A stretch of 64,000 nt of DNA from Octopus bimaculoides (lineage: Eukaryota): assembly GCF_001194135.2 (NCBI RefSeq), contig NC_068982.1, positions 329,196 to 393,195 on the forward strand, in the 5' to 3' direction. Shown in pieces: positions 33,267 to 60,100 of the stretch. The position numbers and the translations under genes are program-made. The notes below the pieces were generated by a model. It ran no database searches and was not told where the DNA came from. It saw only the letters and a program-made list of their open reading frames with translations. Position 1 is the stretch's first letter. Each line of letters opens with the position of its first letter.

Positions 33267-33437
33267 TTATTGTAATGAGCAGATTGGGCTGCGAGGAGAG
33301 TTTTGAACAGAAGTGACTTTTGGAGAGGATTCACATTCAATGTTTGCAGTAACAACCTGTTGGTGTTGTTCTTTCTCAGCAGCCGTTAACTTTAACCCCA
33401 CCAACTCAGCAGCGATTCGTTGGAAGCAGACAGACAC
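33267..33437 (-). CDS. RAB28: RAB28 terminal exon ([17 protein letters not shown]...[10 protein letters not shown])
   Basis: ttttag acceptor after a long pyrimidine tract, phase 0; CaaX box; TAA at 33269-33267. Confidence 0.93.
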   Translation of the reverse strand: MSVCFQRIAAELVGLKLTAAEKEQHQQVVTANIECESSPKVTSVQNSPRSPICSLQ

Positions 33438-36400
33438 CTAAAAGGAGAAGAGAGAAAGGAAACAAGAGAAAATCAACTGAAATATGGCTACTTTCTAAAT
33501 TATTTAAAATATTCTCGAAAACAGACAACAAAACTCTACTTTTTGCAGGGAGTTAAAAAAAAAGAAAAGAATGAGCCCATAGCAAATTGCTTTGTTTCAG
33601 TCTTTAAACTGGCCATGCTGGAGCACTGCCTTCAAAGGTGTCAACTCCAGGGCTTATTTTTCTTATCTAAGCTTGGTACTTATTCAGTCTCTTTTTGCTG
33701 AACCACAAGGTTACAGGAATATAAACAACCCAACACTTGTCAAGTGGTTTGTATGTGTGTGAGGGACGCGGACGAAGAGACGCACGCTGCGTTTCTTTTA
33801 GTTTTTGCCTATCAAAAGTGCTTGAGGAAACCCATCAAGCCAAGTGAGATCATGGTTGTGGCCAATGCCAGTGTTGCATAACTGGCAAGTAAAGAGCACG
33901 CTTCAAGCGCTGGGTAGGATGCTATGCTTGAGAAGACCTGTGAAGCCAAGTGAAACCATAGTCATGGCTGATGCCAGTGCTGTCAGACTGGCACCTGTGC
34001 TGGTGGCACACAAAAAGCAGTTTGAGCATTGGGCCTCATGGAGACAGTGACAGGTGACAGACCTTTGGCAATATACCGTGCTTGTATAGACCTGTTTTGC
34101 CAAGTGAGATTGTAGCCATGGCTGATGCTGGTGTCATGTCAACGGCACCCATGCCAGTGGCATATAAAGAACATCCATTACACTCTTGGAGTGCTTGACA
34201 TTGGGAAGGGCATCCAGCCATAGAAACCATGCCAAATCAGATTGGAACCTGGTGCAGCTCCTTGCCTTATCAGTTTTCAGTCAAACCATCCAACCCATGC
34301 CAGCATGGAAAACAAACGTTAAAGGATGATAATGATGGTGTGTTATATGAAGGTTCGCCTAATTCTATAAGACATCCATTTGATCCAAAATATCTCTTTC
34401 CATATATATATATATATATATATATGTACAGAATTCCAATTTTCCTACCATCACCATCAATAAACCAACAGATGACATCTTTTATAGATTCTTATTACTT
34501 AGATTTATTCATCTGGAGGAATTTTCTTTCTTATTTGAACGAAATGTTTACCTCTTGTTGTGACTCATAATACTATTTCTGAAAGTTTGTGCAATTTGTT
34601 ACATGAATATTTCAGTTATTTGCTGTCTCAGCCATAACAATAGTTAAGCAACTGATAACAAATCACCCTCTGATTGCCATTCCCTTTCTAAAGACGTTAA
34701 GGAACATCAAGCAAGTTTTAGCATATCCTCTTCCAGAGAATGATATGCTTTAACATGTTTCAGAATTGTGTTTCAATGGCTGATTGTGAAGTTGAAGGAG
34801 AAAATTTATAGAAAGACACTGTAGGAGGTTTTAGAAATAATAATTAGCAATTTACTGTACAAACACGCTACAAGTGGGGGGTGGGGGGACTCATTAAATT
34901 TATGTCATGATACAATGTAGCCATAAAGTCTTACAAAATATGAATTGTTTTAATTAAGTTAGTATGATCAATGATTAATCTTTTATTTACATATTCATTA
35001 ACATTATTATATAAACGAACTTACATATTCACCAGTCTTTGCACTAATAAAGTGGTTGGACATATTATGATCTGCAGCAAACTTGACATGCCTTTCTTCA
35101 CTGACAGCTCTGACATGTTCAAGATCAACTGAAAAAGCAAACAGCAAACCATAATCGAAATTGTTGCTGTTCAGCCAGAGTCTGGGACTGTCCTTATATA
35201 TACGGGTTGAGCCTTTTTGCAATTAAGCAGCCACTCTTATGTCTTGAACTTTCCTAATCATTTCTACAGCTCTGCTTTGAGTGTTTTTTTCATTTCTTGT
35301 TTTGTCTGTTTCTGCTGTGTTATGTCCAGGGGGTATGGGTAGATACAGTTCCCCAGGACTTTGCAAGCACCTCTGGACAAATGAAGTGTGAGAAAAAGGG
35401 ACAGCGCAAAGTTTGGGATAGGCGGGATGGAGAATGGCAGAGAAGCAGGTGCAGTGGGTAAACTTTGGTGAGCTCAGGGCTGAAGGAGATGACATTTGCC
35501 TAAGGAGTCATGCAGTGGGACTGAATGTGAAGCCACATGGTTGGGAAGCAAACTGTTGAACCACACAGCCATGTCTGTACATATGGGCTGGCAAAAAAAA
35601 AGAACTGTTTGTTCACAATGAACTTGAAGCACTCTGATAAGTGGTGGCTAACCTCAATCTGTTCCTTGTGCATTCATACTTGTTAGATGCTTGACATTTC
35701 AATGTAGTTTGACACAAACTTGTAACGAGAGACAAGTTGTATTTTGTCTGCTTGGGGAATCAACAGGTCAGGCTTTTCTATTTTAAAAAGAGCAACAAGG
35801 TGATGACGAGAGGATGTTATGGAATGTGTGTGCCAGAAGTGGTTTTCAAGAGTTTGACTGGCCAAGTGAGAGCAACAAAAATGAAGGGGCAGCTTGACAC
35901 TGACCCCGGTTATAAGACCAGGATGAACATGGATGTTCTCTAAATATCCAAACTGAGTGTTGAAAACCATCTACATCATCTTGGTTACATCAGTAGGTCC
36001 AATGGTTTGGGGCTCACATCGATTGAATGAGACTAACCTTGACCAATGAATTTTCATCTCTGATTCAGAAACATGAAGAATGAACAATGTATTTTTAGGA
36101 AAATGGTGGCAGAGGACAAAAGAATGGATCATCTTTAACAATGTGAAGTGCAGATGGTCATGAGGCAAGTATGGTGAACCATCAGAAACAACCTCTAAAA
36201 GCAGGATTTTACTTGAAGAAAGTTATCGGGGTGGGGTGGGGAATAGTGTTGTCTTTTATGAGTGTCTTCCCTTGGACATGACCATCAATTCATATGTGTA
36301 CAGTGACCAGCTGGACAAGTTAAATGCATTGAGCCACCAGAAACATCCAGCACTTGCTAACTGTAAGAACATTTTCTTTTGTGATGACAATGCCAGATCG

Positions 36401-38733
36401 TAAACTTCTTTCAGACAAAGCAAAAGTTATTGGAGCATGACTGAGAAGTTTTGATGTATCCTCCATATTCACCTGAACTGGTGCTTTCAGATTCCCCACT
36501 GTTTTGGTCTCTTCACAATTCATTGAATGGACAGACCATCAAATCTGAAGAGGATGTGAAAATTAATCTGAAAGAGTTTTTCACCAGTAACGATAGGAAA
36601 TTCATTGAGCAGGGAATAATGGATCTGCCTACAAGATGGCAGAGGATACGGGAGCAAACCCCTTATTATATCAATGATTGAACAAACTGCTTTGTGCTTA
36701 AAACTTGCCTTATTTGTGTTTAAAATCTCATTTTGAGCAACTCAGTATATCATCATCAACACCATTTAGCATCTGCTTTCCATGCTGGCATAGATTAGAT
36801 GGGTTGTTTGGAGTTGGTAAACCAGAGAGCTGCACCAAGTTCTGGTTTGGCATGGTTTCTATGGCTGGATGCCCTTCCTAATGCCAACCACTCCAAAGAG
36901 TGTAATGGGTGCTTTTTACCTGCCACTGGCACGGGTGCTTTTGTGTGCCACTGGTACAGGGGCTTTTACATACCACCAGCATGGGTGCCAGTTATGTCAC
37001 ACTGGCGTTGGCCATGATTCCACTCGACTTCTCAAGCACAGCATATTGCCAAAAGTCTCAGTCATTTGTCATCACTTCCATGAGGCCCAACATTCAAAGA
37101 TCATGCTTCACCACCTTGTCCCACATCTTCCTGGGTCTACCTCTTTCACAGTTAGAGATTGGCACTTCTTTACAGAGCTGTTCTCGTCCATACACATCAC
37201 ATGACCATACCAGCATAGTTGTCTCTCTCTCTTGTACACCAAACCTAATGCCTCTTAAGCCCAATTTTTCTCTCAGGACACTCACACTCTGTTGTACACA
37301 CACACTGACATTACACATCCAGCAAAGCATACCAGCTTCATTTCTTACAAGCTTATACATGTCCTCACTGGTCACAGCCCATGTTTCACTGCTATGGAGC
37401 ACAACTACTACTAGATGTGTCCCCACTGGCATTTGATGGAGTCTATTTTCTGTACATTTCAAGTGTTTATTGTAGCTGTGTATCTGCTCCACCCCACACA
37501 CAGACTATTTTCCCTGTCAACCTTCTTCTGATATTGCTGCACCTCGTATGTGTCCATAGCCATTTCTATATATGGAGTAGGGCCATCTACCTGAAGGGAC
37601 TTATAATTTGTCTGCTTTCTTATTATCTAAGACTTTGTTTTTTGCAAGATTAACTCTAAGGCCCTTTGATTCTAGACCTTGCTTCCACTCCTAAAATTTC
37701 TTCTCTAGTTCTGGAAGTGATTCAGCTATGAGAACAAGATCATTAGCATAGAGGAGTTCCCAGAGGCAGCCTGACTTAAATTCCTCTGTTATTGCCTGGA
37801 AGACTATGATGAACAAGAAGGGGGCTGAGGACTGATCCTTGGTGAACCCCTACTTGTATCCTGAACTTTACCTTACTGACAGCATCTCTGTATATGGCTT
37901 GTACAGCTCTCACCAACCACTCATCTACCCTTAGTTTCTGCACTGAGCACAAGATAAAGGAGCAGGGAACACTGTCAGAAGCTTTTTCCATGTCAACAAA
38001 AGCCAGTTACAGGGGTTTATTTCTGACAAAGTATATACATACCTTGTCAAAAATAAACCCGTGTAATTGGCTTTTGTGTGTGTGTGAGGAGCAAACATGA
38101 CTGTTGTTAAGAAGTTTGCTTTGTTATCATGTCATGACTGAAATTAGTAGATGAAACTGTGCAGAAGCCTGTTTCACATACACATGTGTGCATTTGTGTC
38201 CACATGTCTTTGCTCGACATCATTTTAGTGGCTATGTTTATGCTTTCCATAAACAAAAATGTCTGGCAGTGGTTTGGTGTGTGAAGACAAGGAAAAAAAA
38301 GCAGACATAAAATGCTGCTGCTGATGATGATGATGATGTGTGTGTTTTATTTCCCCATCACCTGTGCCGATTGCATCATCTTTATCACTTCCTTCATAAG
38401 TGACTGCATCAAACTGTCTGCACCCAATATACTCTAACTTCCATGTTTTTATACATTACTTACCATCATGTTCCCTACCCTGGCCAACCGACCACCTCCT
38501 CCTGCCTTTGTTCATGTCAGGGACCCAATGTTTCCTCTGCATGTTAACTAAAAGAAGGATTTGCACCCCAACCTCATAAAACCCTACTCACCAGTAACCA
38601 CTACTCAAACAGAGCCCTGGGTTGGAAGGTTGTCGCCTGGGTGGTGCAACGGTGTCATCTGGCAGGAGCAGTAGGAGGAAATCACCAACAAATGCTGGAT
38701 GAAGCAACACACTGTTGCAATGCATTCTCCCCA

Positions 38734-38775
<42 letters not shown>

Positions 38776-41700
38776 GCCCTGAATTTGGAGCCCAACTGTA
38801 AAGAAGTTTGTTCCCTGTGAACTGTGAAGGAAGGCAACATTAATTGCACTTGACTGGTGAAGAAAAGAGACTTTGTCCAGTAACGCAGGAAGCAACTAAA
38901 TCATGATGTAGTTTGTAATGAAATGCCAAACGTGATTATGGAATATTGACTCTGCAACATTGACTTTAATATACAAACTCTTTCTAATTATTTTCATGCT
39001 AAATAATTTGACAGGAGAAGAGTATCAATCGTTAGTACTCAACAGCAACAATGGCACAAGTTGAATTCCCGAGACAACTAAACTAACTCAATGTCTTTCA
39101 TTGTGTGATTAAATTACAGCAAGCATCACTGCCATGCCCCTACAAACACAAATGTTCAAAGATCAATAGTTACCTTTGTTTCCAACGAGTGCCAAATGTG
39201 ATGGAGATTTCCCACTGTGGAGACTGGATCTGTTAATAGTTAGCAACCAATCTTCCAGGTTCTCAAAGCTGATATAATTGGTAATGTCATAAACCAAAAT
39301 AATTCCCTTTGAATTGGATTAAAAAAAACAAACAAAAACAAAACACAAAATTGGGGGGGAGGCTAAAATTCCATTTTTCAGGACAGTATTAGCTTGAATA
39401 TATTGGTAATACAGTATCAGTCAACATGTAGTAAATCTTCCTTGAATGTAGCTATTATTCTTAACTCCTTAGTCTTTCTCATCATCATTTAGTGCTCACT
39501 TTCCCATGCATGCCTGAGTCAGGTGGAGTTTATTTGAGGCAGATTTTCTATGGTCAAATGCCCATTCTTGACACCACCCTCCCCTATTCCCAAGCAAGCT
39601 AATATTTTCCCAGAATATTGGCAACAAGTGAAACTGCTTGTATGACAGTAACACTCACAACCCTCAAGCAATGCCAAAGAAGCACACACACAGAGTTTCC
39701 ATCAACCAAATCCACTCATAAGGTTTTAGTCAGCCTGGGGCTACAACAGAAGACACTTGTCCAAGGTGCCATGCAGTGGGATTGAACCCAGAACCATGCT
39801 ATACTGCAACTGTTGCCAAATCCTGAACCACATGAAATTGCAATTCAAATAATGTTACAGTCAAGAGTCAAAAACTGGAACTAATTTTTTTTCCATGGGT
39901 ATTTATAAGCCTGCAATGTGATTAGATGATGCTTATTGGGTTGGGTAGGGGTAGAATATCTGCTGGTGTTAATATATTCAATGAACAAGCAGATATGCTT
40001 CAACTATTTTATAAAAGTTTTCTTTTTTATAGCTTAGCCAAATCGGAAAGAGATATGTCCACAACTCTCGCTGGCCCTTCAGCATTGGTCAGCTTCATAC
40101 AGCAGAGCGAAAGCTGTATCTGGATGTCTACTGAAAACGTGTGGACAGGAGAGTAAAGCCAGAGGGTAGGTATTTTGAGGATGAGGAATTAGGTGTATTG
40201 TTTAGCTCGAGCAGCAGAAAAGAAGTCAGTATGGGTGATGAGATGAAGAGAAGTGCGTGTGTTGGGTAAAATTAAAAGAGTATAAAAAATCAGTGAGCTG
40301 AGAGAAGCAGAGGTTGTTGCAGTAGAAAAGGTGAGAGGGGTGCAATGGGAAGTTAAAATTTCCTTGCTGGACATTGTTAACAGGAACTCGGGGAGGATAT
40401 ATAAGTGGTGGGCTCTTGAAATGTGTTGGGGAGGAGTCTCAGCTGTGAGGTTCCTTGTGGTACAGGTGAACTCAGACATTCTTTCGGGTATCCCTTCTTC
40501 TATGGACGATATTACATGGATAGCAGTTCAACTGGTCATTACTTGTTGACATGAATCTGCTCTTAAGAAGCCATTCCGGAGGAGATCAGCATTACCTGTG
40601 GGTTAGAGATTAAAGTACGAAGGTTCTTATTAATGAGTTAGATGGCTTTTTGGTGTTCTAAGATCTTTGTGTCTTTCTTTAGCAGCATCGTTTTAGATGT
40701 GGGAGCAATCTTCCATTGTCAGGATCACCAAACTTTGTAGAGTCAGCCATTGTTCAGGAATGAAGTACGTTGGACTTTGGTTTGTATTATGTTAATGAAT
40801 GAAAGGTAATCAAGAGAGATCGTTAATAATTGGAAGCATTTGTGCAGTGAGAGGTACAAGCATGGATGGGTGCACAAGGAGCTTGCTTTGTAGCCATGGG
40901 ATCTCAGGTTCAATGCTGTGTCTTGGCACAAGTGTCTTCTACTATAGCCCCAGGTTGGCCAACCTTGTGAATGGATTTGGTAGATGGAAACTAAAAAAAA
41001 GTTTAAATTGTGTGCATGTGTGTATACACATATACATTTACATACACAACACCTATGTATGTATGTCTGTATGTACCTTGTACTGACATCATGTGATGGT
41101 TGTAAACAAGCGTTACTGTCATACTAACAATGATATTCATTTCCAGTTTTCTGTAAGAAACATGTCTGGCCACTGGGAAATATTACCTTGCTTGGAAAGG
41201 GGTAAGAGTTAGGAGCAGGAAGGGCATCCAGCAGTTGAAAATCTGCCTCAACAAATTCTGTCTGACCCATGCAAGCATGGAAAAGTGGGTGTTAAATGAT
41301 GATAATGATGATGACTATCTTTAAACTGTTGATGGAGACAAATTGGAGAATGTTTTTTGAGGTCTCTGGTGTGGAAACAGCGAAGGAAGAATGAAGAATT
41401 ACATGAGAAGGTTGTTAATATACAAGAGGAGAATACAAGAATTGATGAGTGCATCAGAGAGAGAGAGAGAGAGAGAGAGTCTAAAAACATGCAAGATAAC
41501 CAAGAAATTCTTAAGCCACAAACAATCAAATGCTTTGTTATGAGATTGTTTTCACAAAATATTTTTGCTGAATCTGAATTTTTAGTTGAAACAGAAAAGA
41601 AATACAATTTGATCTAAATTTTGCATTTTTTTTTACTAGTATAATAGTAATAATAGTGATTTTCTTATACAAGTGTCTTTGATGGGTTCATAGACTAATG

Positions 41701-43956
41701 TGGGAATTTCTGTCACTATTTATAAATTTATGGAAAAAAGAAAACAAGCCTTACCTGTGCACCATAAATGTAATTTTCCAGCATGCTGCTCCCTAAACAG
41801 ATCCCACTGATATCCCAGATTTGCAGTACCACATTCATTTGACCTGAAACAGAAAGTACAATTCCAAAAGTACTTTAGGATAAGAGGAGATAAACAAGTC
41901 ACTGATGGCATTCAAAAGGTTTACAAAAGTTTGCATCAAGTTTTTTTTCTAAAATTCCACAAATTCCACAGAACCAGGAATGAAATTTCATTGCTTCTTT
42001 GCATTGTGGAGATTATCTGAATATAAACAGATTGGGAAAAGAAGTTAACAGGAAGTTTCTACTACAGCAGTTGGATGAAATCTGATACAGGAGACCAACA
42101 GGTGAATCCCAGGTGACCAATTTCAAGTCCTCAGGGAAGGGAAGTTGACTAAAATAATAATAATAATTTGAACCAATTAAGTTGCAGAATCACACTGAAC
42201 AATTTTTCATTTTGAGATAATCCTGAACTTTACCAGACTGTAAAACAGTTAAAAAAGAAATCCTAAGCAAAACGAAAAACCAAGTGAGCTCTGAACTTAG
42301 GCAAATGCCCCAATAAGCAAATAGCTGAAATTCTCTTCAACATTGGAAGATGTGGGACGAAGTGGTGAGAAAGGATCTACAGACATTGAGACTCAAAGAG
42401 GGGGTGATAGGGGACAAAGACTGCTGGTGGTTTGCTGTACTTGAAAGGACACATCAAGCTAAGTAAAAGCATGGTGGTCCTTGCATACAGGCCGTCCCCT
42501 GCATCCCTAACCTTGTGGGCTCATGGGTGCTGAGGCCACATAAAAAGCACCTGCACTAGTGCCATGTAAACGCACCCAGCACACTCTGTAAATTGGTTGG
42601 CATTAGGAAGGACATCCAGTAGTAGAAACCATGCCAAATCAGACAACTGGAGCCGAGACAGCACTTCAGCTGGCCAGCTCCTGCCAAACCGTCCAACCCA
42701 TGCCAGCATGGAAAATGGACATTAAATGATGATGATGATATATAGAGAAACATAGACACACATACGATATATCGAGAACGTTAAATGATAAATTCTAGGC
42801 ATGTGTCTGTGTTTGTCCCTCCCCTGCCACTGCCTGACAACAACCTGAGATACTTTGTTTACATCCCAGTCACTTAGGTCGATAGAAAAAGTATCCGGCT
42901 TTAAGTACTGGTGTCAATTCAGTTGACTAAAGAGATGCTTCAAGTCGGTGCCCCAGTATGGCCACAGCCTAATGACTGAAACAAGTAAAAGATAAAAGGT
43001 AAAATAATAATTATCGTTATTTCAATTTGCATTTAGTTACATGAAAATATTAGCTTGAAATTTCTTCCTGTATTTGTTATATTGGTTTCAAAATATAGCA
43101 CAAGGCCAGCATTTACAGGGGAGGGAGTAACTTGGTTACATCAACACCAGTGTGCAACTGGTACTTATTTTACTGGCCCCAAAAGTGGATCTCAGCAGAA
43201 TTTCAACTCAGAATATAAGGATGGATGAAATATTGCTTAGCATTTTACCTGCTCTGCTAATGATTTTCACCTGGCCTGCTAATGATTTTCACCTGATCTG
43301 CTAATGATTTTCATCTGGTCTGGTCTGCTAATAATTTTTACCTGCCAGAAGGTTGCACCAGGCTCAATCTGATCTGGCAAACTTTCTACAGCTGGATGCC
43401 CTTCGTAACGCCAACTACTTCGAGAGTGTAGCGGGTGTTTTTACGTGCCACCAGCACAAGAGCCAGTCAGGCGGTTCTGGCAATGACCACGCTTAAAAGG
43501 TGCTTTTTACATGCTATCTGCACAGGAGCCAGTCTGGCGGCACTGGCAATGACCATGCTCAAATGTTGTTTTTCACGTGCCAGTGGCACATGTGCCAGTA
43601 AGGCGACACTGGCAACAATCACACTCGAATGGTGCTTTTTGCATGCCACTGTCACGGGAGCCAATCCGTGGCCCTGGCAATGATCACACTCGGATGCGCT
43701 TTTAACATTCCACTGTCATGAGTGCCAATCAGGTGGTACTGTCATCAGCCATGTCAGCGATTTTGATTTCACTTGCCTCAATAGGTCTACATAGGCGTAG
43801 CAGTGGCTGTGTGGTAAGTAGCTTGCTTACGAATCACATGGTTCCAGGTTCAGTCCCACTGTGTGGCACCTTGGGCAAGTGTCTTCTACTATAGCCTCGG
43901 GCCGACCAAAGCCTTGTGAGTGGATTTGGTAGACGGAAACTGAAAGAAGCCCGTCT

Positions 43957-43995
<39 letters not shown>

Positions 43996-46900
43996 GTATG
44001 TATGTGTGTGTATATGTTTGTGTGTCTGTGTTTGTCCTCCCTAACATTGCTTGACAACCAATGCTGGTGTGTTTACATCCCCGTAACTTAGCAGTTCGGC
44101 AAAAGACACCGATAGAATAAGTACTCGGCTTACAAATAATAAGTCCTGGGATCGATTTGCTTGACTAAAGGCGGTGCTCCAGCATGGCTGCAGTCAAATG
44201 ACTGAAACAAGTAAAAGAGTATAGGAGATAAACGATGGGCTTCTTAAAGTTTCCATTTACCAAATCCACTCATAAGGCTTTAGTAGGCCCAGGGCCCGCC
44301 CATAATGCTATGCAGTGGGTCTGAACCTGAAACGACATTGTTGGGAAGTGAACTTCTTAAGTACACAGCAGCTATGCATACCTGTGCAAATTTTTTAACA
44401 AAATAAGACATTGTTGCACCTGGAGATGAATCCTACCCAAGTTCAATGGGGCATCATTGACTCAGATATTGTCATTTTATCTTCATGCTATACCCATGCC
44501 ATACTTAATATTTTATCCATAAAAAGGATTTGAAATCACACAACTAAATGAACTGGGTCATTTGAGAGTGAACAATGCAAGCTGTTGACCTATCAGCAAA
44601 CAATTTGTGACTGAGTTGGCCAACAGGATTTGTTTAATCTCTACTGACATTGACAACAAAAAAAAAAAAAAAAAAAAAAGAATATCTAGAAAATGAAAAA
44701 CAAATATCACTTACCCCTTAGAATTATTCTTTTCAAATAAAAGTCTACTCCCATCGTTTTTTTATATTCTTTCCAGAAATTGTCCTGGGTGTATCGAGTT
44801 GCTATGGAAGTCTGCAAATTTAAAGAGTTGATTGATTTAGATTTAATGGCAATGCATAGAGATTTCCTTTTGTAAGCAAATAGTAGCTAGGCTGAAAATA
44901 TAATCTATAAAAGGTAAAAATAAGACAGCTCTTAAAATTTCAACGATTATTTTGATAAGTTGTTAGCATGCTCTAAATCTTCCTGTCAGAAAAGACAAGA
45001 ATGCTGTTAAGCTGTTTTTAATAAATCCATATCAGTAAGAATGACTGACAGAAACTTTAAACCTCAATGGTTGAATATCAGTCAACACTACCAATGAATG
45101 GCTTTGGGAAAGTCTTGGATATATTTAAGCTACGATGACAGACAATGACAAGAGAGAAGTGATAGAAATGTAGCTTCACAAGTTAATGCACAACATGGCA
45201 TACATGAATTAAAGATGAAGTTGTCTGGAAATGACCTTTCTAATATTTCAAGGGTTAAGGCCATAGATATTTGGATAAGTGATCAATGAAACGTTTGCCC
45301 TGAATGACCTTTCACTGCACCATTGCTACCAACCGAAACATAGGACCATAATAATGGCAGCACCAATGAAGGCGTTTGATGGACACTGGTAGGCATAACC
45401 AAACGGGTAGTGGCAGCAGGCTCTGAGAATGGACGACAGTGACTTTACAGAGTGACCCGTGAAGAGATGCAGTAACCCTTAGTATAGTAGATCCCTAAAA
45501 TTCTTCTTGGATACCAGTTGTGAAAAAACCTCAAAGGAAGGAGATCTTTAGTCTGTAAAAAAGTATTGCAACCAAACAGAAGGAACAAACACTTGAAACA
45601 TGTGGATAGATTTGTGTTGTGCTTGATTACTCTTGAAAATGCCATGAAGTAAATATAAGTTGCCAGGAATGTGTTTAGTATGTAAAATTGGTCTCTCCAA
45701 CTGTGTTACACTACTAAGCTGATTGGGTATTTTAGCAGTGTGTTCACGGATGGTTAAAAAGTTGGATGGAGTGTTGAAGAAGGAGCAAGAACCTCTGAAA
45801 TGGGTATCATCCACCCATTACCCACCTGTCATCTATTTTTACTATCTTCATTTGCATTGTTTAGATGAATGCATTTATGTACAAAATGTTTGTAATGGTT
45901 AAGATTGATTAGGGACACAATAATATGAAATGTCGGAGTCAGCAGTTTTAACGATAAAAATTTGTTGTTATAACTGCATGTCGTAGGATGTGAAAGATGG
46001 ACAATGGATGAAGTTTTAAGAAAGTATTTATTTACCGTTACGTTGAAAAATACCTTGCCTCATCGGGCAGGTTATAAAATCTGAGAGCATGTGAAAGTAA
46101 GTTGGATGTGGTAGAATTTTTCTTTGTATAGTTTTGTGTACATGTTCTCTTAGCAGTAAACCACTGATAGTGATAGAATGATGTTGTAAGAGAACAGATA
46201 TAGAGCTAGTGAAAGTTGTAGGGTTGTGGGACATTGTCTCACAGTTGCTGACAGTAAATTTCATTTCTCCGTCTGACTATTGTCTTTAGTAGCTGCCTTG
46301 CTTGGGATCATGATTCTAACAGTCTGTTCCTTAACTGATTGAGTTGTCACGAGCCAACTCACTCAGTTGTCACCAAGTGACCTCTGGTTTTTGCTTGGGG
46401 GTTCTTGCTTTTATAACTATCCAGAAGGACAGACATACCGTTGAGAACCATGGGCTTCGTTGGTGGTGCTGTGATGTCTCTATTCTAGCTTTTGGTGAAG
46501 TAGAAGGGGTTATAAGGGTCAAGTGGGGAAGACATTATTTTGGCCTAGTTAAAAGGCAATCTGGCAAATGTAAAACTGCTGTCACTGAAAAAAAGCCATT
46601 GTTCTACTGTGGGAAAAGTTCTGTTGAATTGTTAATTTAAATTTGGCTATGGTGGATTGAATCCACTTCATGCTTGCAAGATTCACTACATGTTGTATCT
46701 TTCAGTGGTGGTTCTGAGTTCTATAGATGTAAACTTCAGAAATAAACAGAAGTAGTTATGCTGACATGCCTTTTAATTTCATTCTTGCATTGGATGACAG
46801 AAAGAAACATTTCAATTAAAACATTTGTTGAACTCTTACAACTTGATATCATTGACATTTCCATTGACATTCAGACAAACCTGCCCCAAAGCATTTCAGG

Positions 46901-49900
46901 TTGTCCAGCATGACCCAAAGATCAGTACATGATGAACTCAAGGAGAAATATCATCAGTATAATGGACGTGTATTGCCAGTGTAGATGGTGTCTACAAATG
47001 AATGAAAACAATTTGTCAAGCAAAGTGAAACAAAGTTGGCATCATGAATCATCATCATCATCATCGTTTAACGTCCGCTTTCCATGCTAGCATGGGTTGG
47101 ACGATTTGACTGAGGACTGGTGAAACCGGTTGGCAACACCAGGCTCCAGTCTAATTTGGCAGAGTTTCTACAGCTGGATGCCCTTCCTAACGCCAACCAC
47201 TCAGAGAGTGTAGTGGGTGCTTTTACGTGTCACCCGCACGAAAACGGCCATGCTCGAAATGGTGTCTTTTATGTGCCACCCGCACAAGCCAGTCCAGGGG
47301 CACTGGCAACGATCTCACTCGAAAATCCTACAGGAGCCAGTCAGGCGGTACTGGCAACGGCCATGCTNNNNNNNNNNNNNNNNNNNNNNNNNNNNNNNNN
47401 NNNNNNNNNNNNNNNNNNNNNNNNNNNNNNNNNNNNNNNNNNNNNNNNNNNNNNNNNNNNNNNNNNNNNNNNNNNNNNNNNNNNNNNNNNNNNNNNNNNN
47501 NNNNNNNNNNNNNNNNNNNNNNNNNNNNNNNNNNNNNNNNNNNNNNNNNNNNNNNNNNNNNNNNNNNNNNNNNNNNNNNNNNNNNNNNNNNNNNNNNNNN
47601 NNNNNNNNNNNNNNNNNNNNNNNNNNNNNNNNNNNNNNNNNNNNNNNNNNNNNNNNNNNNNNNNNNNNNNNNNNNNNNNNNNNNNNNNNNNNNNNNNNNN
47701 NNNCTTCCACGGGTTCCCTCAACTGTTAGGGTGTGGCACTTTTTCACGCAGCTATCCTCATCCATTCTCACCACATGTCCATACCAGCGCAATCGTCTCT
47801 CTTGCACACCACAACTGATGCTTCTAATGTTCAGCTTTTCTCTCAAGATACTTACACTCTGACGGGTATTCACATTGACATTACACATCCAACGGAGCAT
47901 ACTGGCTTCATTCCTTGCAAGCTTACGTATGTCTGTTGCTATTAACCTCAAACACATGGATTCTTATCTTTGCCATTTACCCCGTGGCTTACTATTGGCT
48001 TTCATACTATACTACAAACACTGAAAATAGATTCTAATTATTTACTTACAATGACTATTCACTTCTGGGACTACCATTTATTTTCCAGTAAACATTGAAG
48101 TATGAAAATTAATCTATACAACTACCAGCAGAGCAGATCATAGTTTGATGCAATTTGTTTGAAATTTGTAACAGGACAAAAATGGATGATAATGTATTTG
48201 TAGTAACTGTGTCAGTGGATCCTGTGCCAGTGGCACATGAAAAGCACCATTCGAGCATGATCATTGACAGCATCGCCTTACTGGCACATGAAAAATAACA
48301 TTCAAGTGTGGTCGTTGCCAATGCCACCGGACTGGCTCCTGTGCAAATAGCACATAAAAAACAGCTTTTGAGCATGGTTGTTGCTAGGACTATCTGACTG
48401 GCCCTCGTGCCGGTGTCACGTAAAAGCACCCACTACACTCTCGGAGTGATTGGCGTTAGGAAGGGCATCCAGCTGTAGAAACTCTGCCAAATCAGATTGG
48501 AGCCTGGTGCAGCCTCTGGTTCACCAGTCCTCAGTCAAACCGTCCAACCCATGCCAGCCTGGAAAGTGGACGTTAAACAATGATGATGATGATGTATTTT
48601 TGTTTTAAACTGAATTTTGATTTTAATTTGTTTCAATAATTTGCTTCTTTTTTCCTTTTTTTTTTTGTAAATATTATCCAGTTCCTTATTGACTCAATAA
48701 TGGTGGGAATTCCAACTAATCACACTGAATCTCTACTTGTATACATTCTTTTATTCTTGGGAGCTTTCTGCTGTAAAATAAAGGCTTGTCACAGAAGTCT
48801 GACCTATGTTTCAGTAGTATTTAGCAAATGGAATATACATTTTTATCTGGATAAGATGCTGTAGTGGGGTTTAAATTTGATGTCACACTCAGAAAACGAA
48901 TGTTTTCACTGAGCAACAAGCAAAACGGCCACATCATATCAGGTGACTTGCTTTGAATCCCGACCAGCTGCAATTGTACAATTCATGGAATTTTCCATGA
49001 GTTTTCCACTAAACATTGTTATAAATTGAGGTTTGCACCAAGTTCTCACAAGCAGAGGGATGAGATGCATGCATCATGTGTGGCAAAGGTTGAGAGGTTC
49101 CAGAAAAAAACAGACAAACGCAGAATTCTTGGTCAAATGCTTGACCTCAGGTTCAAAAGAATCACTTGTCTTCCATGAACATAATATTCTCATTTCTTCA
49201 AGCAATGACTAGAGCAAAACACTTCATTTCACACTGCCCCAGTCCACTCAACTGGCAAAAATAAGTAATCCTGCAACGGATCGGCATCGCATCCAGGTAA
49301 GGAACATATAGTGTGAGAATTTACAAAAAAAAACAAAAAACAAAGAAGGGTATGTAAACAACAAACAGATGCATTAGTTTAACGCTTGAGAAGTGAGAAA
49401 GTCTTTTACGTTTTGAGCCTACGCTCTTCAACAGAAGGGGACACAGAAATAAACAGGGAGAGAGAAATGACAACAGGAAAAAGCAGAAAGTACAAAAAGT
49501 TCAAATGTCGTGGTGTATTGGAGCGATTTCTCATCAATGGAAGAGTCCAGTGTAATCTATGGGTAGGAGAGGTGCAGCCGAAGTGTAGGAGTCCGAGTGT
49601 AGGCGAGTAGAAAGTCCAGGTAGAATAACCCAAGAAAAGTTCGAAGTGTTATGAGGTGGAGACAGGATGAAACTGGAGCGACCACATGAGCGTGTAAACA
49701 ACAAACAGATGTATTAGTTTAATGCTCAGGAAGTGAGAGAGTCTTTTACATTTCGAGCCTATGCTCTTCAACAGAAAGGAATACGAGGAAATAAACAGGG
49801 AGAGAGAAACGACATGCTACCGAAACTGGGAAACTGACCCTTGTGAGCCTGGCATGGCTTGAGAAGGAAACATTAATTAATAAAATATCTGAATAATTTT

Positions 49901-51454
49901 TGGTGTTTAACAATCAATATTATTTTCTTTGATGATTTCCAAGTCAATTTTCCTTCACACTAGTGTCTAATTTAATCATTTTCAAATTTCAAAAAGTGGG
50001 GTAAAATGAGTAATGACTAATTTCAGTAATTTCTTCTCATTAACTGCATGATGTATAAATGTATCAGGAAGACAGGCATTCCAGCAAATCGTAAAGAAGC
50101 TATAGAGAATATTTTGACTTTTATTATTATTATCATTTAGTGGAGTTTCGTTGATTTCATATCATGTGCCGTTTTCCCTTCATCCTCTTTTATTTGACCT
50201 AGATAGTCATTTATTTTCTTTTGTATTTCTGATCTTTCTAATGTCTAAGGATTGATATTGACGAGTATGAGTCTGTTTTCTGGAGAACTGTAGTGGCGTA
50301 TTTGCCTTACAATGGCTTACTCGTTTTACCCCAGCCAAATTTGTCTTTTACATACTCAGAGAACGGCGATAATTTCCTGAAATAGTGATCAGATTATGTT
50401 ATAATGCTTCTAATGCATTTAGGGAAGGCCATTTGCCTAGTTGATATAGTTTTGTGGCAATCAATCGGTATTGGTCTCGAGAAACAAAAACTATATTTTC
50501 GGCAAAGTTCCGTTAAAAATGCAGTGAAAAAAACCCACCTCATTTTGCCCCATCAACTCATATCTATTTCCGACTAAATTTCAACATAGAGAATAAAATA
50601 TTTCGAGTTAGGAACAAAAAAGTAAATATATATTTTTTGCAATCTTTAATTCAAGCCACAAAATTTATGCAGTTAATAAGTATCGTTCAAATTTCTCTCA
50701 TTACTTCGGTGTTTTGTTTATTCGAACTTTGGTTTTGCTATTTAAATGATTGAAATGGTTAGCAGAAATATTGGAAGGCGATATCAACCGGTTGGAGTCG
50801 TTCACCAAATCCTGGAAAATTAATTCAATAATGCAAATATGCCAAATTGTTTGCTGTATATTTTAAAAATTCACTTAGAACGGCTACACAGATATTTACT
50901 ACGACTTGAGATCCGAAGGAGCTTCCTTTCCTTTTCCATTTTTACAGTAAACTAACAAAACAAAACAAAACAAAAAATGTGCGACTTTTTCGAATTTCGA
51001 ATAAATCTTTGCGACTCATTCATTACGAAATATTTTAAGTATTTGTAGAAAAAACAAAATAAAACCAGAAAAAAAAAGCAGTTGGTAAAATAATTTCCTA
51101 ATCAGGTTACATAATTAAATAAATTTCACGAAAGAAACGACTGAAAATAGTTTAATTGAAGTTGATTGAATGAAGAACATTTTAAAGAATTAAAATGTTT
51201 TTTTCTTCTGTTTTTCAGTCGTTGAAAGAGAAAAACTATTTTCAAGTTTATTTCTTTATAATTGAATCCCGTAACAAAAATTATTTAAACTTCATATTGA
51301 ATATAATTACGAGTTAAATAAATGATTGACATTTGAAACTGAGAGGGTTCTGGAAAGTGGAGGCTGGGCAAATATTTACCTTTCCCGTGAGACGATCGCC
51401 AACGATAACAATCTTAAGTCGTTCATCAAAACATTCATTGTCCGAGTCTGACAT
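33267..51454 (-). CDS. RAB28: Ras-related protein Rab-28, complete 6-exon gene, 222 aa
   Basis: Exons 51454-51380, 44811-44715, 41843-41755, 39306-39174, 35128-35025, 33437-33267 total 669 nt with phases 0,1,0,1,0. Protein MSDSDNE...[15 protein letters not shown]...TMGVDF...LQIWDISG...[16 protein letters not shown]...LVGNKVDLEH...FISAKTGE...CFQRIAAE...CSLQ* is colinear with human RAB28 (recalled). Confidence 0.95.
33810..34330 (+). mobile_element. RTE-type LINE 3' region, degenerate
   Basis: Family 3' terminus at about 34280-34330. Confidence 0.6.
35025..35128 (-). CDS. RAB28: RAB28 exon 5 ([35 protein letters not shown])
   Basis: tttcag acceptor, gtaagt donor, phase 1/0; SAK (G5) motif. 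Confidence 0.93.
36210..36700 (+). mobile_element. Mariner transposase relic (C-terminal catalytic region)
   Basis: Decayed DNAR and [18 protein letters not shown]...FF....GI..LP.RWQ, matching the mariner HPPYSPDLAPSDYHLF motif. Confidence 0.8.
36750..37870 (-). mobile_element. RTE-type LINE 3' kilobase, degenerate
   Basis: 3'UTR plus [20 protein letters not shown] and QGSVLSPLL peptides. Confidence 0.75.
38734..38775. repeat. (TAC)14 microsatellite
   Basis: Direct read. Confidence 0.95.
39174..39306 (-). CDS. RAB28: RAB28 exon 4 ([20 protein letters not shown]...LALVGNK)
   Basis: AAG acceptor after a long U-tract, gtaact donor, phase 0/1; NK of the NKxD motif. Confidence 0.92.
40845..41000 (+). 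mobile_element. CORE-type SINE 5' part
   Basis: gtgtcttctactatagcc...gtgaatggatttggtagatggaaact. Confidence 0.6.
41755..41843 (-). CDS. RAB28: RAB28 exon 3 ([30 protein letters not shown])
   Basis: tttcag acceptor, gtaagg donor, phase 1/0; switch II. Confidence 0.93.
42500..42736 (+). mobile_element. RTE-type LINE 3' end
   Basis: Family terminus plus (GAT)n. Confidence 0.72.
43080..43260 (-). mobile_element. SINE (third family), degenerate
   Basis: Reverse complement resembles 27864-28080. Confidence 0.5.
43254..43344. repeat. 22-bp tandem repeat, about 4 copies
   Basis: ctgctaatgattttcacctg(gc/at) units. Confidence 0.85.
43345..43790 (-). mobile_element. RTE-type LINE 3'UTR fragment with about five ~65-bp tandem units
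   Basis: Repeating ggtgctttttacgtgccac...ctggcaatgaccacgc units. Confidence 0.72.
43793..44219 (+). mobile_element. Full-length CORE-type tRNA SINE with central (TG/TA)n
   Basis: tRNA-like head, CORE-like ccttgggcaag segment, microsatellite linker, conserved 3' module ending aagtaaaagag. Confidence 0.8.
44237..44370 (-). mobile_element. CORE-type SINE 5' fragment, inverted relative to its neighbour
   Basis: Reverse complement aligns to about 43805-43955 with an internal deletion. Confidence 0.65.
44715..44811 (-). CDS. RAB28: RAB28 exon 2 ([32 protein letters not shown])
   Basis: ttgcag acceptor, gtaagt donor, phase 0/1; switch I. Confidence 0.93.
47048..47933 (-). mobile_element. Young 5'-truncated RTE-type LINE (contains a gap)
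   Basis: (CAT)n tail, 3'UTR, and 230 nt of ORF end nearly identical to the copy at 20731-20960. Confidence 0.88.
48205..48594 (+). mobile_element. RTE-type LINE 3'UTR
   Basis: Tandem units, family terminus, (GAT)n. Confidence 0.82.
49402..49438 (-). ncRNA. Minimal hammerhead-like motif, degenerate copy
   Basis: CCUU-CUGUUGA-A-GAGC(GUAG)GCUC-AAAAC-GUA/AAAG. Confidence 0.5.
49742..49779 (-). ncRNA. Minimal hammerhead-like motif, degenerate copy
   Basis: CCUUU-CUGUUGA-A-GAGC(AUAG)GCUC-GAAAU-GUA/AAAG. Confidence 0.5.
51380..51454 (-). CDS. RAB28: RAB28 exon 1 ([25 protein letters not shown])
   Basis: ATG at 51454-51452; gtaaat donor, phase 0; MSDS N-terminus typical of Rab28. Confidence 0.92.
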
Positions 51455-57138: not shown

Positions 57139-60100
57139 GAGTGAGAGAGCAGAGCATGCCATCAAAGTGACACTGGGCTAAAATATATGAAACCTAGTTT
57201 ACCCATCATGACTACTTGTCTGATCAGGTTACACCAGGCACATGCATCATAACCATATGTGAGTGACATGGTGATCTCGTATCAAGATAAACAGCGTATG
57301 ACTTTGGAGGTGGGGCCCAGTTAGAATTTTCTTCAGGTCAAGTAGCTCATCTCACTCAAAAGGTCCCTGAATAAGGGTTGTTTAAGGATGTTGAATGAAA
57401 CACCCATGTTCCCACAGATGAATTATCCAAGCCTCAAAGAATTCCTCTCAACAACACATAGCTATGATGCTCCCCCACTACTTCTGCTCATGATCAGAGA
57501 TGCAGATATCGTCAACCATTAAAGGACATGCTCAACTGGTCAAGCAGCTGACAAGCAAAACTGTGGTATCGAGCAGAATATTTGTCGTAGCCCACCTTTT
57601 GTACGAAGACAAAACAATGCACATGATAACACTTCCAATCAGTTAAGATGAGAGGCCATGAGAGCCAGTGCCTGGTACTACATCAGGGAATTTATTATTA
57701 TTATTATTATTATTGGGTGTCATCGTGTTATGTTTTTCCAAAGTGTTATGGCATAAGAAAGAAAGCAAATGATTAAGATAGAATGGATTGGGAATAGAAT
57801 CTAAGTAGATTCTTCGACAGTTTAAAATCACATAAGAATAAGTTTTAAATGAATAAGTGATAAAAACGAACCGAAAGGTAGTTGGTCTACGATTATGGAG
57901 TGCCAAAGAAGATACTAGCGTATTTAACAATGGAAAGCGGCCTTGCCGACATGCATTGTCGAAGTCGTCAAAATCTAGTGACCAAATCATGGCACCAGCT
58001 AAATTCCTGCTCACAAGGTAATTGCCCTGGAATAATAACAAGAAATTTAAGTTTTGATAAACATTTGGTACATTGAAGATAATAAAACAATTCTGAGAAT
58101 TGTTGAAATTCACATAAAAATGCAACTTTCAACAAGACATTTTTCTGTAGACGATGGAAAAGGATAATTATTTTTACGACATGTAGTTACAAATTTCTAG
58201 AGGAATTGAGAATGAAATGATGAGACCTGAATTACTGTCCTATGAGACTTTAAATCTAACAAGATGGCAAATTGGTGAATAGGTAGAGAATTGGAAGAGT
58301 TGTAAGGGTATCAGAAAGCCTGCTCAGAGTTCAACTTTGCCATTTGTCCTTTCAGATCGATAAATAAAGTATCAGTCCAAAGCGGTGTTCTGATAGAAAC
58401 ATTTTGAGTGTCAGACAGAATGTCTTGTGTTATTTGCTCTGGACCTATGCATTCTGAGTTCAAATCTTGATTTCTGTTATCGGAATTAGTGGATGGTAAC
58501 CAAAAGATAGTACCACTAATGGGGAAAAACAAAGGGAAAATAGTTTCCTTCGTTCAATAGGAAGATCAACTGGCACCACCATTAAATGATTTAACACACA
58601 TGTTACCACTTTAGCACAAGTGCAGCACAGTTTTAACATTAGTTGCTGGGAAACCTTGATTAAGCAGACCGATAATCAGAAATATTTCAGGTGTGGAAGC
58701 AAATGATTAAGATAGAAGGGCCTTTGAGTCAACCTAGCTAAAACCAAAGTACTAATAAGTAGGAAGGCAGCCAAACCACAAATCCCTTCAGGTAGATGGC
58801 CCTGCTCGATCTGTAGAAAAGGCATAGGTAGAAACTCTACAAGACGTACCCAGTGTAAGCTATGGGCACANNNNNNNNNNCATAGGTAGAAACTCTACAA
58901 GACGTACCCAGTGTAAGCTATGGGCACATAAGAGGTGCAGCAATATCAAAGGAAGGCTAACTAGCAAGATAGTTTTTATGTGGCAGATGCTCAGGAGCAA
59001 TAAACTCTGAAAATGTGCAGAGAACAACTTCTGCTACATTCCAGGGAGAAAAACTAGAAGTAGTTGATAGCTTCCGTTACCTAGGTGACCAAGTCAGTAG
59101 TGGGAGAGGCTGCGCTGAAAGTGTAGCTGCTAGAATAAGAATAGCCTGGGCAAAGTTCAGGGAGCTCTTACCTCTGCTGGTGACAAAAGGCCTCTCGCTC
59201 AGAGTAAAAGGTAGACTGTATGTCGCATGTGTGCAAACAGCCTTGCTACATGGCAGTGAAACATGGGCTGTGGCTGCTGAGGACATGTGTAAGCTTGCAA
59301 GAAACGAATCCAGTATGCTCCGATGGATGAGTAATGTCAGTGTGCATACTTGACAGAGTGTAAGTACCTTGAGAGAAAAGTTGGACCTAAGAAGCATCAG
59401 TTGTGGTGTGCAAGAGAGACGATTGTATGGTCATTTGGCGAGAATGGACGAGGATAGCTGTGTAAAAAAATGCCACAGCCATGTGGTTGAGAGTACCTGT
59501 GGAAGAGATAGACCCAGGAAGACCTGGGATGAGGTGGTGGAGCACGACCTTCGAACATTAGGCCTCACCGAGGCAATGACTTGTGACCGAGACCTTTGGA
59601 AATATGTTGTGNNNNNNNNNNATGACTTGTGACCGAGACCTTTGGAAATATGTTGTGCGTGAGAAGACCCGGCAAGACAAGTGAGACCATAACCCGTGGC
59701 CTTTACCAGGGGTGTAACCAGCCTACTTATGCGTAACTTTCCTTCTTTGGACACTAAACTCTGCTTGTGAAGACCTGTTGAGGCAAGTGAATTTGAAATC
59801 AAATTGGATGACAGCACCAAACGACTGGCATCTCTGCTTGTGGAGCGCTAAGAGCACCATCTGAGCATGATCGTTGCCAGGGCTGTTGACTGGCTCCTGT
59901 ATCGGTGGCACATAAAAAGCACCATTTGAGCGTGAACGTTACCAGCGTCACCTTACTGGCACTTGTGCCAGTGGCATGTGAAAAACAACATTTGAGCGAG
60001 GTTGTTGCCAGTGCCGCTGGACTGGCTCCTGTGCCGGTGGCACGTAAAAGCACCCACTACACTCTCTGAGTGGTTGGCGGTAGGAAGGGCATCCAGCTGT

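Follow-up and report, generated by a model that had tools for sequence, protein, structure and literature searches.

The stretch of DNA analyzed here, which we call the window, comprises 64,000 nucleotides of the genome of Octopus bimaculoides (contig NC_068982.1, positions 329,196 to 393,195) and carries on its minus strand the gene for the small GTPase RAB28. In humans RAB28 is a gene for cone-rod dystrophy, and its product is a cargo of the BBSome and of intraflagellar transport (IFT); little is firmly established about its guanine nucleotide exchange factor, its GTPase-activating protein (GAP) or what its GTPase cycle contributes. A tblastn search with human RAB28 located six collinear exons in the window, all with canonical splice sites, which when joined encode 222 residues (Table 1). 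The assembled protein agrees at every residue (100% identity) with XP_014772441.1, which is entitled "ras-related protein Rab-28 [Octopus bimaculoides]". The gene is a known and annotated one, and what we report is a variant of its catalytic site that is real and previously unremarked, the catalytic glutamine of switch II being replaced by isoleucine. A literature search found no paper mentioning a Gln-less RAB28 of octopus or of other animals, and Gln-less Rabs do not figure in a review of non-canonical GTPase activation published in 2026 (PMC13236570).

Several lines of evidence bear out the proposal, made in a sequence-only reading of this DNA, that the gene is RAB28. Every source-named match among the best 120 protein matches is named Rab-28, and the top match among solved structures by sequence was human RAB28 (2HXS/3E5H, E=1.7e-64), with the next Rab, Rab6, following at 4.9e-28. 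An AlphaFold2 (AF2) model of the octopus protein had a pLDDT of 76.5, near 90 in the core and with only moderate confidence in switch I and switch II, and in Foldseek its best two matches were again 3E5H (TM 0.87) and 2HXS (TM 0.85). The octopus protein resembles canonical RAB28, as represented by the human protein (P51157) and C. elegans RAB-28, in its full-length identity (53-58%), its G-domain fold, its human numbering at T26 and Q72, a CaaX box that ends in Q and its presence as a single copy. Because residue numbering coincides with that of human RAB28, the octopus Ile occupies the position of human Q72. The NKxD, SAK and CaaX motifs, which the sequence-only reading had listed as intact, are present as NKVD (G4), SAK (G5) and CSLQ, together with G1 (GDRLTGKT), G2 (T44) and G3 (DISG); the CSLQ tail, found also in O. 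vulgaris and O. sinensis, is a farnesylation-type CaaX box instead of the CC or CxC of most Rabs. Where the switch II Gln (Q72) itself is taken as a mark of RAB28, the octopus protein has Ile72, and as several other bona fide RAB28 orthologs are without this Gln it is no strict criterion for the family.

A check for a second, canonical RAB28 paralog had also been proposed, and none was found. A six-frame scan of the window for W[DE]x[GAS]Gx detected the motif at this one place, and an alternative canonical exon is therefore absent from the window; likewise, no second Octopus RAB28 protein was present among the top 120 RAB28 matches in a database that includes three Octopus proteomes. Both tblastn with human RAB28 and the motif scan led to a single exon, and we therefore rejected the idea that the window contains another, canonical form of exon 3 or a further RAB28 gene. 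The best explanation of these results is that the gene is the single, functional RAB28 ortholog of O. bimaculoides.

Table 1. Positions of the RAB28 gene, of its transcript forms and of other features in the window (position 1 is the first letter of the 64,000 nucleotides).
Feature	Position	Strand	Remarks
RAB28 coding span, Octopus bimaculoides	33267..51454	minus	six coding exons, 669 nt, 222 aa; tblastn and exon assembly
5' untranslated region, exon 1	to about 51595	minus	transcription reaches this point
Exon 1	51380..51454	minus	ATG at 51454; M1-K25, including P-loop G19-K25 (GDRLTGK)
Codon 21 (Ras G12 equivalent)	51392..51394	minus	CGT, Arg; P-loop, exon 1
Exon 2	44715..44811	minus	T26 to first base of G58; switch I region, T44 (G2) kept
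Exon 3	41755..41843	minus	89 nt, AG/GT borders; G58-Q87, interswitch strand and switch II
Codons W67 D68 I69 S70 G71 I72	41817..41800	minus	TGG GAT ATC AGT GGG ATC
Remodeled switch II, W67-S77	41785..41817	minus	canonical form WDIGGQTLGGK
Codon S70	41808..41806	minus	AGT
Codon I72	41802..41800	minus	ATC
Codon C73	41799..41797	minus	TGT
Codon S76	41790..41788	minus	AGC
Exon 4	39174..39306	minus	G88 to first base of V132
N130/K131 of NKVD	39180..39175	minus	exon 4
Exon 5	35025..35128	minus	rest of V132 onward
D133 of NKVD	35126..35124	minus	exon 5
SAK (G5)	35045..35037	minus	exon 5
Exon 6	33267..33437	minus	C-terminal helix and tail
CaaX box CSLQ	33281..33270	minus	exon 6
Stop codon TAA	33269..33267	minus	exon 6
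Alternative acceptor in exon 4	39268 (joint 41755 to 39268)	minus	drops first 38 nt of exon 4
Joint skipping exon 4	41755 to 35128	minus	133 nt, frameshift, 136-aa product
Joint skipping exons 4 and 5	41755 to 33437	minus	237 nt, in frame, removes NKxD and SAK
Exon 3 with unspliced intron 3 (contig)	41400..41844	minus	stop after 10 codons
High-depth segments of intron 3	39660..39850, 40890..41070, 41170..41350, 41453..41485		
GH18 chitinase motif open reading frame	about 57643..58125	minus	
Protein-kinase motif open reading frames	14850..15560 and 24778..25206	plus	VLHRDLK; KVGDFGLA...GTQIYMSPE; long insert between
Reverse-transcriptase-like fragments	19003..21470		
Reverse-transcriptase-like fragment	37094..37501		RAB28 intron 4
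Reverse-transcriptase-like fragment	47120..47957		RAB28 intron 1

The differences between octopus and canonical RAB28 (Q72I, G70S, T73C, G76S and G21R) were examined in an alignment of 99 non-cephalopod RAB28 sequences against four cephalopods. The cuttlefish-type sequences came from Acanthosepion pharaonis and several Logan transcriptomes; one cephalopod-like sequence, P0009, derives from the Logan assemblies of runs SRR27666059-085. Position 72, the equivalent of Ras Q61, is Gln in 99% of the non-cephalopod sequences and in the cuttlefish-type set and Ile in Octopus, and position 70, the equivalent of Ras A59, is Gly in 100% of the former, Gly also in the cuttlefish-type set and Ser in Octopus. 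The Ser and Ile that the sequence-only reading had seen at these two places were thus correctly assigned, and its WDISGI motif indeed lies on the minus strand within exon 3 of RAB28, between AG and GT borders. Two neighboring residues that had escaped that reading are changed as well, namely position 73 (Thr in 99% of non-cephalopod sequences, Ser in the cuttlefish-type set, Cys in Octopus) and position 76 (Gly in 96%, Gly and Ser, respectively), and the remodeling of switch II is therefore wider than the loss of the Gln. A further change, also missed before, is located in the P-loop (GDRLTGKT) at the equivalent of Ras G12: position 21 is Gly in 99% of the non-cephalopod sequences, Ser in cuttlefish-type cephalopods, Arg in O. 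bimaculoides and Cys in O. vulgaris and O. sinensis. Most Rabs have Ser at this position (GDSGVGKS), so that Ser21 of the cuttlefish-type cephalopods is unremarkable; Arg, by contrast, is bulky. With R21, S70 and I72, substitutions are found at the equivalents of all three of Ras residues 12, 59 and 61, which is one of the marks of the GTPase-deficient Rnd/RhoH-type class.

The codons indicate something of the history of these changes. Three nucleotide substitutions are required to convert a Gln codon (CAA/CAG) to the ATC of Ile72, and the loss of the Gln is therefore old and multi-step; judged from the codons, the route likely passed via Leu or His. G70S corresponds to GGT becoming AGT, and codon 21 forms a series from TCN (Ser) to TGT (Cys) to CGT (Arg), in which each Octopus step is one base. 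In the genome assemblies of O. sinensis and O. vulgaris the orthologous exon likewise encodes a Gln-less switch II, differing from that of O. bimaculoides only by I69V, while the cuttlefish-type cephalopods keep WD[LI]GGQSLGG together with the P-loop GDSATGKT. Because these cephalopods keep GGQ, the loss of the Gln and the two glycines is specific to the octopus lineage, and on the sequences compared it is placed between the separation of the octopus line from cuttlefish-type cephalopods and that of O. bimaculoides from O. vulgaris. An alignment across mollusks, which had been proposed as a means of dating the change, was in this way successful in assigning it to the octopus line but gave no finer date: a protein search with residues 1-114 for more octopods returned 15 candidates with zero cephalopod fragments among them, and the runs labeled "organism B" yielded no sequence that could be aligned at 80% likeness.

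As the argument depends upon a handful of codons, their accuracy is of obvious importance, and the possibility of an error in the genomic codon, raised in advance by the sequence-only reading, was checked against independent DNA and RNA runs, all of which match the window. A genomic contig of run X15 spans exon 3 and both adjoining introns with 0 differences; the spliced RNA contigs of X1, X3, X16, X17, X28, X29, X30 and X31 have exon 3 letters identical to the window; the raw RNA reads of X21-X23 agree with them (about 11x in X23); and sampled 31-mers of exon 3 were recovered at 100% in twenty runs drawn from DNA libraries of 2015 and 2021 and from five RNA studies. Exon 1 and its P-loop also showed 0 differences in X23 RNA reads, X3 contigs and the X15 genomic contig, with the splice from exon 1 to exon 2 seen. 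The junction of exons 2 and 3 was present in all RNA contigs and reads; that of exons 3 and 4 was missing from X29 but present in the other seven contig runs.

The letters are consequently no assembly error. A related explanation is that A-to-I editing restores the canonical residues in the mRNA, and it has some appeal, since octopus mRNAs are heavily recoded and the codons of S70 (AGT) and S76 (AGC) would become Gly codons if their A were edited. The codon of Ile72, on the other hand, never becomes a Gln codon through A-to-G changes, and no plus-strand T>C difference was found at 41808, 41802 or 41790 (S70, I72 and S76) in X23 reads or in the contigs of eight RNA runs, at a detection level (about 11x depth in X23, with variants listed from at least 3 reads) that editing of S70 or S76 might escape if it were slight or confined to certain tissues. 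RNA editing as a rescue was rejected for the Gln on these grounds, and we consider the chance that either error or editing accounts for the unusual residues to be negligible.

Transcripts of RAB28 were not uniformly productive. Use of the alternative acceptor in exon 4 produces the reading CAG CTT TGA, so that translation ends one Leu beyond residue 87, and in X29 this joint was the only downstream junction of exon 3 that was assembled (contig depth 45). Skipping of exon 4 was seen in X16, at depth 47 vs 77 for the canonical form, and also in X30; exons 4 and 5 were skipped together in X31 (depth 4.4). An X3 contig of 704 nt (depth 13.5) joins exons 1, 2 and 3 and then continues into unspliced intron 3, representing either a retained intron or pre-mRNA. 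These unproductive forms may be noise, or they may tune the level of the protein. Elsewhere in intron 3, four segments (Table 1) had very high RNA depth, many A>G and T>C differences and joints of the "opposite strands" kind, which is consistent with dispersed SINE-like (short interspersed element-like) repeats and an (AG)n microsatellite that attract reads from elsewhere in the genome; it is also feasible that inverted copies in the intron could form edited double-stranded RNA.

The frequency of unproductive splice forms, together with the rapid evolution of the lineage, might be taken as a sign of gene decay, with constraint relaxed and the gene an incipient pseudogene. Rapid evolution is indeed a property of all coleoid RAB28, and one to which the sequence-only reading did not refer. 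Identity between coleoid RAB28 and that of other animals is 52-58%, against 67-78% in comparisons among scallop, limpet, brachiopod, annelid, hemichordate and mammal; the divergence of the coleoid proteins thus exceeds that of other animal RAB28 by about 15-20 percentage points (relative-rate p about 1e-6 vs scallop or limpet). We rejected a faster rate in Octopus than in Sepia (relative-rate p 0.3-1.0), the acceleration being common to coleoids.

Decay is contradicted by the selection that the gene has experienced since the change in switch II. Between O. bimaculoides and O. sinensis/O. vulgaris we counted 16 nonsynonymous and 27 synonymous differences (dN=0.031, dS=0.22), and the resulting dN/dS (omega) of 0.14, or 0.13 for the G domain, shows purifying selection over this interval, an analysis for which the sequence-only reading had called. 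GxxxxGKT, T44, D68/G71, NKVD, SAK and CSLQ are conserved in both Octopus species compared. Because omega is 0.14 and these motifs are intact in both, the gene is not a pseudogene, in agreement with the earlier reading, which had relied upon the open reading frame (ORF), the splice sites and the NKxD, SAK and CaaX motifs; the ORF and splice sites are intact in three genomes (AG/GT sites throughout), and correctly spliced full-length RNA occurs in many runs. Both a processed and a unitary pseudogene were rejected on the same grounds, and decay, although the splice forms speak in its favor, is largely refuted and in our estimation highly improbable.

The same data bear upon the possibility that octopus RAB28 has become a pseudoGTPase that operates independently of nucleotide, with Arg21 and Leu22 of the P-loop and the altered switch II abolishing productive GTP binding and the protein serving only as a farnesylated scaffold. 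The bulkiness of residues 21-22 and the four changes in switch II are compatible with such a loss, as is the moderate confidence of the AF2 model in both switches. Yet the retention of GxxxxGKT, T44, D68, G71, NKVD and SAK across a dS of 0.22 at an omega of 0.14 would be unexpected if binding were irrelevant, and Ras G12R still binds GTP. We therefore view a pseudoGTPase as very unlikely; the conserved motifs and low omega argue that nucleotide binding still matters in octopus RAB28.

Octopus is not alone in having a RAB28 without the catalytic Gln. A profile-free scan of 1.84 billion cluster representatives, with names obtained by exact look-ups, identified WDVSGA in the whitefly Bemisia tabaci (with the P-loop GDISTGKS), WDVGGL in the sawflies Neodiprion and Diprion and in the vespid wasps Polistes, Vespula, Vespa and Mischocyttarus, WDVGGT in both the barnacle Amphibalanus and the louse Polyplax, WDTGGA in the tardigrade Paramacrobiotus and WDIGGR in the nematode Soboliphyme. 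A chytrid protein of 325 aa that its source does not call Rab-28 (Cladochytrium, WDIGGH) was also recovered; the alignment covered the animal sequences. The seven animal sequences (P0157, P0160, P0163, P0167, P0175, P0224 and P0249, from whitefly, sawflies, vespids, barnacle, nematode, louse and tardigrade) all align as RAB28, and NKxD and SA[KRQ] are kept in all seven except the truncated louse record. A C-terminal CxxQ was counted in six of the seven, the barnacle tail reading CALM and that of the tardigrade CAIS. Bemisia provides a striking parallel to octopus in combining the loss of the Gln with G70S and a bulky P-loop residue. All seven are unlike octopus in their replacement residues (L, A, T or R instead of I) and belong to separate lineages. 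As judged by these alignments, independent losses of the same Gln occurred in at least seven animal lineages besides octopus, which makes the octopus finding less singular and the Gln-less RAB28 a variant that is uncommon yet recurs, and no isolated curiosity. The 99% conservation of Q72 must accordingly be read as partly a matter of sampling slow-evolving species, because Gln-less RAB28 recurs elsewhere.

By its sequence, octopus RAB28 belongs to a known class, that of small GTPases naturally without the catalytic Gln, and we think it probable that it is impaired in hydrolysis and biased toward the GTP-bound state, yet functional. What the data show is a gene that is expressed, spliced and maintained by selection, in which switch II was remodeled in the octopus lineage (G70S, Q72I, T/S73C and G76S) and the P-loop gained a bulky residue 21. 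GTP and Mg2+ binding would be retained via GxxxxGKT, T44, D68, G71, NKVD and SAK, and farnesylation via CSLQ. With the cis-glutamine that positions the attacking water gone, intrinsic hydrolysis would be very slow, and RAB28 would reside mostly in the GTP state, competent for membrane association and IFT. It might be switched off by a TBC-type GAP that gives Gln and Arg in trans, or through protein level or extraction from the membrane. In O. bimaculoides, Arg21 could possibly hinder the Arg finger of a GAP, by analogy with Ras G12 mutants.

This proposal has support from engineered and natural relatives. The human mutant Q72L and its C. elegans counterpart Q95L are the standard "GTP-locked" forms of RAB28 (PMC7092623, PMC5145144), as the sequence-only reading had stated of the Q-to-L substitution, and like octopus RAB28 they have a hydrophobic aliphatic residue in place of the switch II Gln. 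RAB-28(Q95L) is enriched at the periciliary membrane of C. elegans and still undergoes BBSome-dependent IFT (PMC7092623, PMC5145144). The octopus protein differs from these mutants in being natural and fixed and in its extra switch II and P-loop changes. The nearest relative of RAB28, IFT27 (RABL4), conserves the switch II Gln poorly, has a very low intrinsic GTPase activity and presumably depends upon a GAP (PMC5902210). Rnd1-3/RhoE and RhoH naturally carry substitutions at residues on which GTPase activity depends; their hydrolysis is low or absent, and they are controlled by expression and localization instead of the GTPase cycle (PMC4319381, PMC9175762). Octopus RAB28 shares with IFT27 and the Rnd and RhoH proteins natural substitutions at such residues; these are members of other families, however, in which the deficiency was shown biochemically, whereas reduced hydrolysis and GTP bias in octopus are inferred. 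Within RAB28 itself, the seven other Gln-less lineages appear to offer a precedent for a RAB28 that works without the residue.

Several observations weigh against an impaired, GTP-biased protein. Rab25, with its natural WDTAGLE, resembles octopus RAB28 in having an aliphatic residue in place of the Gln in switch II of a Rab; it belongs, unlike RAB28, to the Rab11 group, and according to its discoverers it retains GTPase activity (PMC3039820). The sequence-only reading had cautioned that TBC-domain GAPs supply a Gln in trans, and this is well founded, as these GAPs insert an Arg and a Gln finger, displacing the Rab's own Gln (PMC5902221). USP6NL is listed as a TBC-domain GAP for Rab28 (PMC5902221), and TBC1D1/4 were listed for it by Zhou et al. 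(2017), as cited in PMC5902210. Because TBC GAPs replace the Gln of the Rab, the on/off cycle of octopus RAB28 may be essentially normal in vivo. Position 21, moreover, is seemingly unconstrained, as it is Arg or Cys in close species, and the level of full-length protein is made uncertain by the abundance of unproductive splice forms in some RNA runs.

Taken further, these points lead to the alternative that the changes are near-neutral, the two TBC fingers maintaining a GTP/GDP cycle that is about normal and the substitutions having accumulated by drift. The independent losses of the Gln in at least seven further RAB28 lineages are in keeping with this, as are the general speed of coleoid RAB28 evolution, in which Octopus is no faster than Sepia, and the presence of Arg, Cys or Ser at residue 21 across cephalopods. 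The distribution and conservation of the changes suggest otherwise. Q72 and G70 are 99-100% conserved in the 99 other RAB28 sequences, which implies that both sites are as a rule strongly constrained; of seven Octopus-specific changes in conserved columns, three lie in switch II, within residues 68-78 (hypergeometric p=0.011); and the new switch II sequence is itself conserved between Octopus species. In addition, the Rab Gln contacts the GAP backbone in a published TBC-GAP complex, and its loss should affect GAP binding (PMC5902221). Near-neutrality strikes us as somewhat unlikely on this balance, and we continue to favor a functional protein with slowed hydrolysis.

How slow that hydrolysis might be is a separate matter, since Rab25 keeps its GTPase activity and that of IFT27 is merely very slow, and the absence of the Gln is not to be equated with a locked state. 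In a more extreme proposal, octopus RAB28 would be truly hydrolysis-dead, a constitutively GTP-bound ciliary Rab corresponding to Rnd/RhoH among Rho proteins, whose output is set by transcript processing, through the abundant forms with a premature stop, and by protein level with no GAP involved, and the same state would have arisen convergently in whitefly, Hymenoptera, barnacle, louse and tardigrade. We regard this as doubtful; if true, it would mean that the conserved job of RAB28 needs no GTP hydrolysis.

Gln-less RAB28 proteins that stay under purifying selection, in Octopus and independently in several arthropod, tardigrade and nematode lineages, amount to natural experiments: is intrinsic hydrolysis needed by RAB28, or are a GTP-like conformation and a GAP acting in trans enough? 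Were these proteins GTP-locked, they would reveal what portions of switch II the binding of effectors or of the BBSome requires. Were their hydrolysis normal, they would add to the evidence from Rab25 that Q-to-L "locked" Rab mutants have been over-interpreted. The practical consequence is modest, being confined to annotation and to the interpretation of RAB28 mutants, and no new system is involved.

The surroundings of the gene are conserved among the three Octopus species. The loci of O. sinensis and O. vulgaris contain six RAB28 exons and an upstream GH18 gene, as in the window, where an ORF with the GH18 chitinase motif GAMIWSLDFDDF matches the Glyco_hydro_18/CBM_14 gene found just upstream of RAB28 in those two species. 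Downstream of RAB28, on the opposite strand, two ORFs with protein-kinase motifs look like exons of a gene for an eIF2-alpha-kinase-like protein. Repeated fragments of a reverse-transcriptase-like ORF, with SETWAVT in their translation, interrupted by runs of N that represent assembly gaps, are scattered through the window, including introns 1 and 4 of RAB28, and are probably remnants of long interspersed elements (LINEs).

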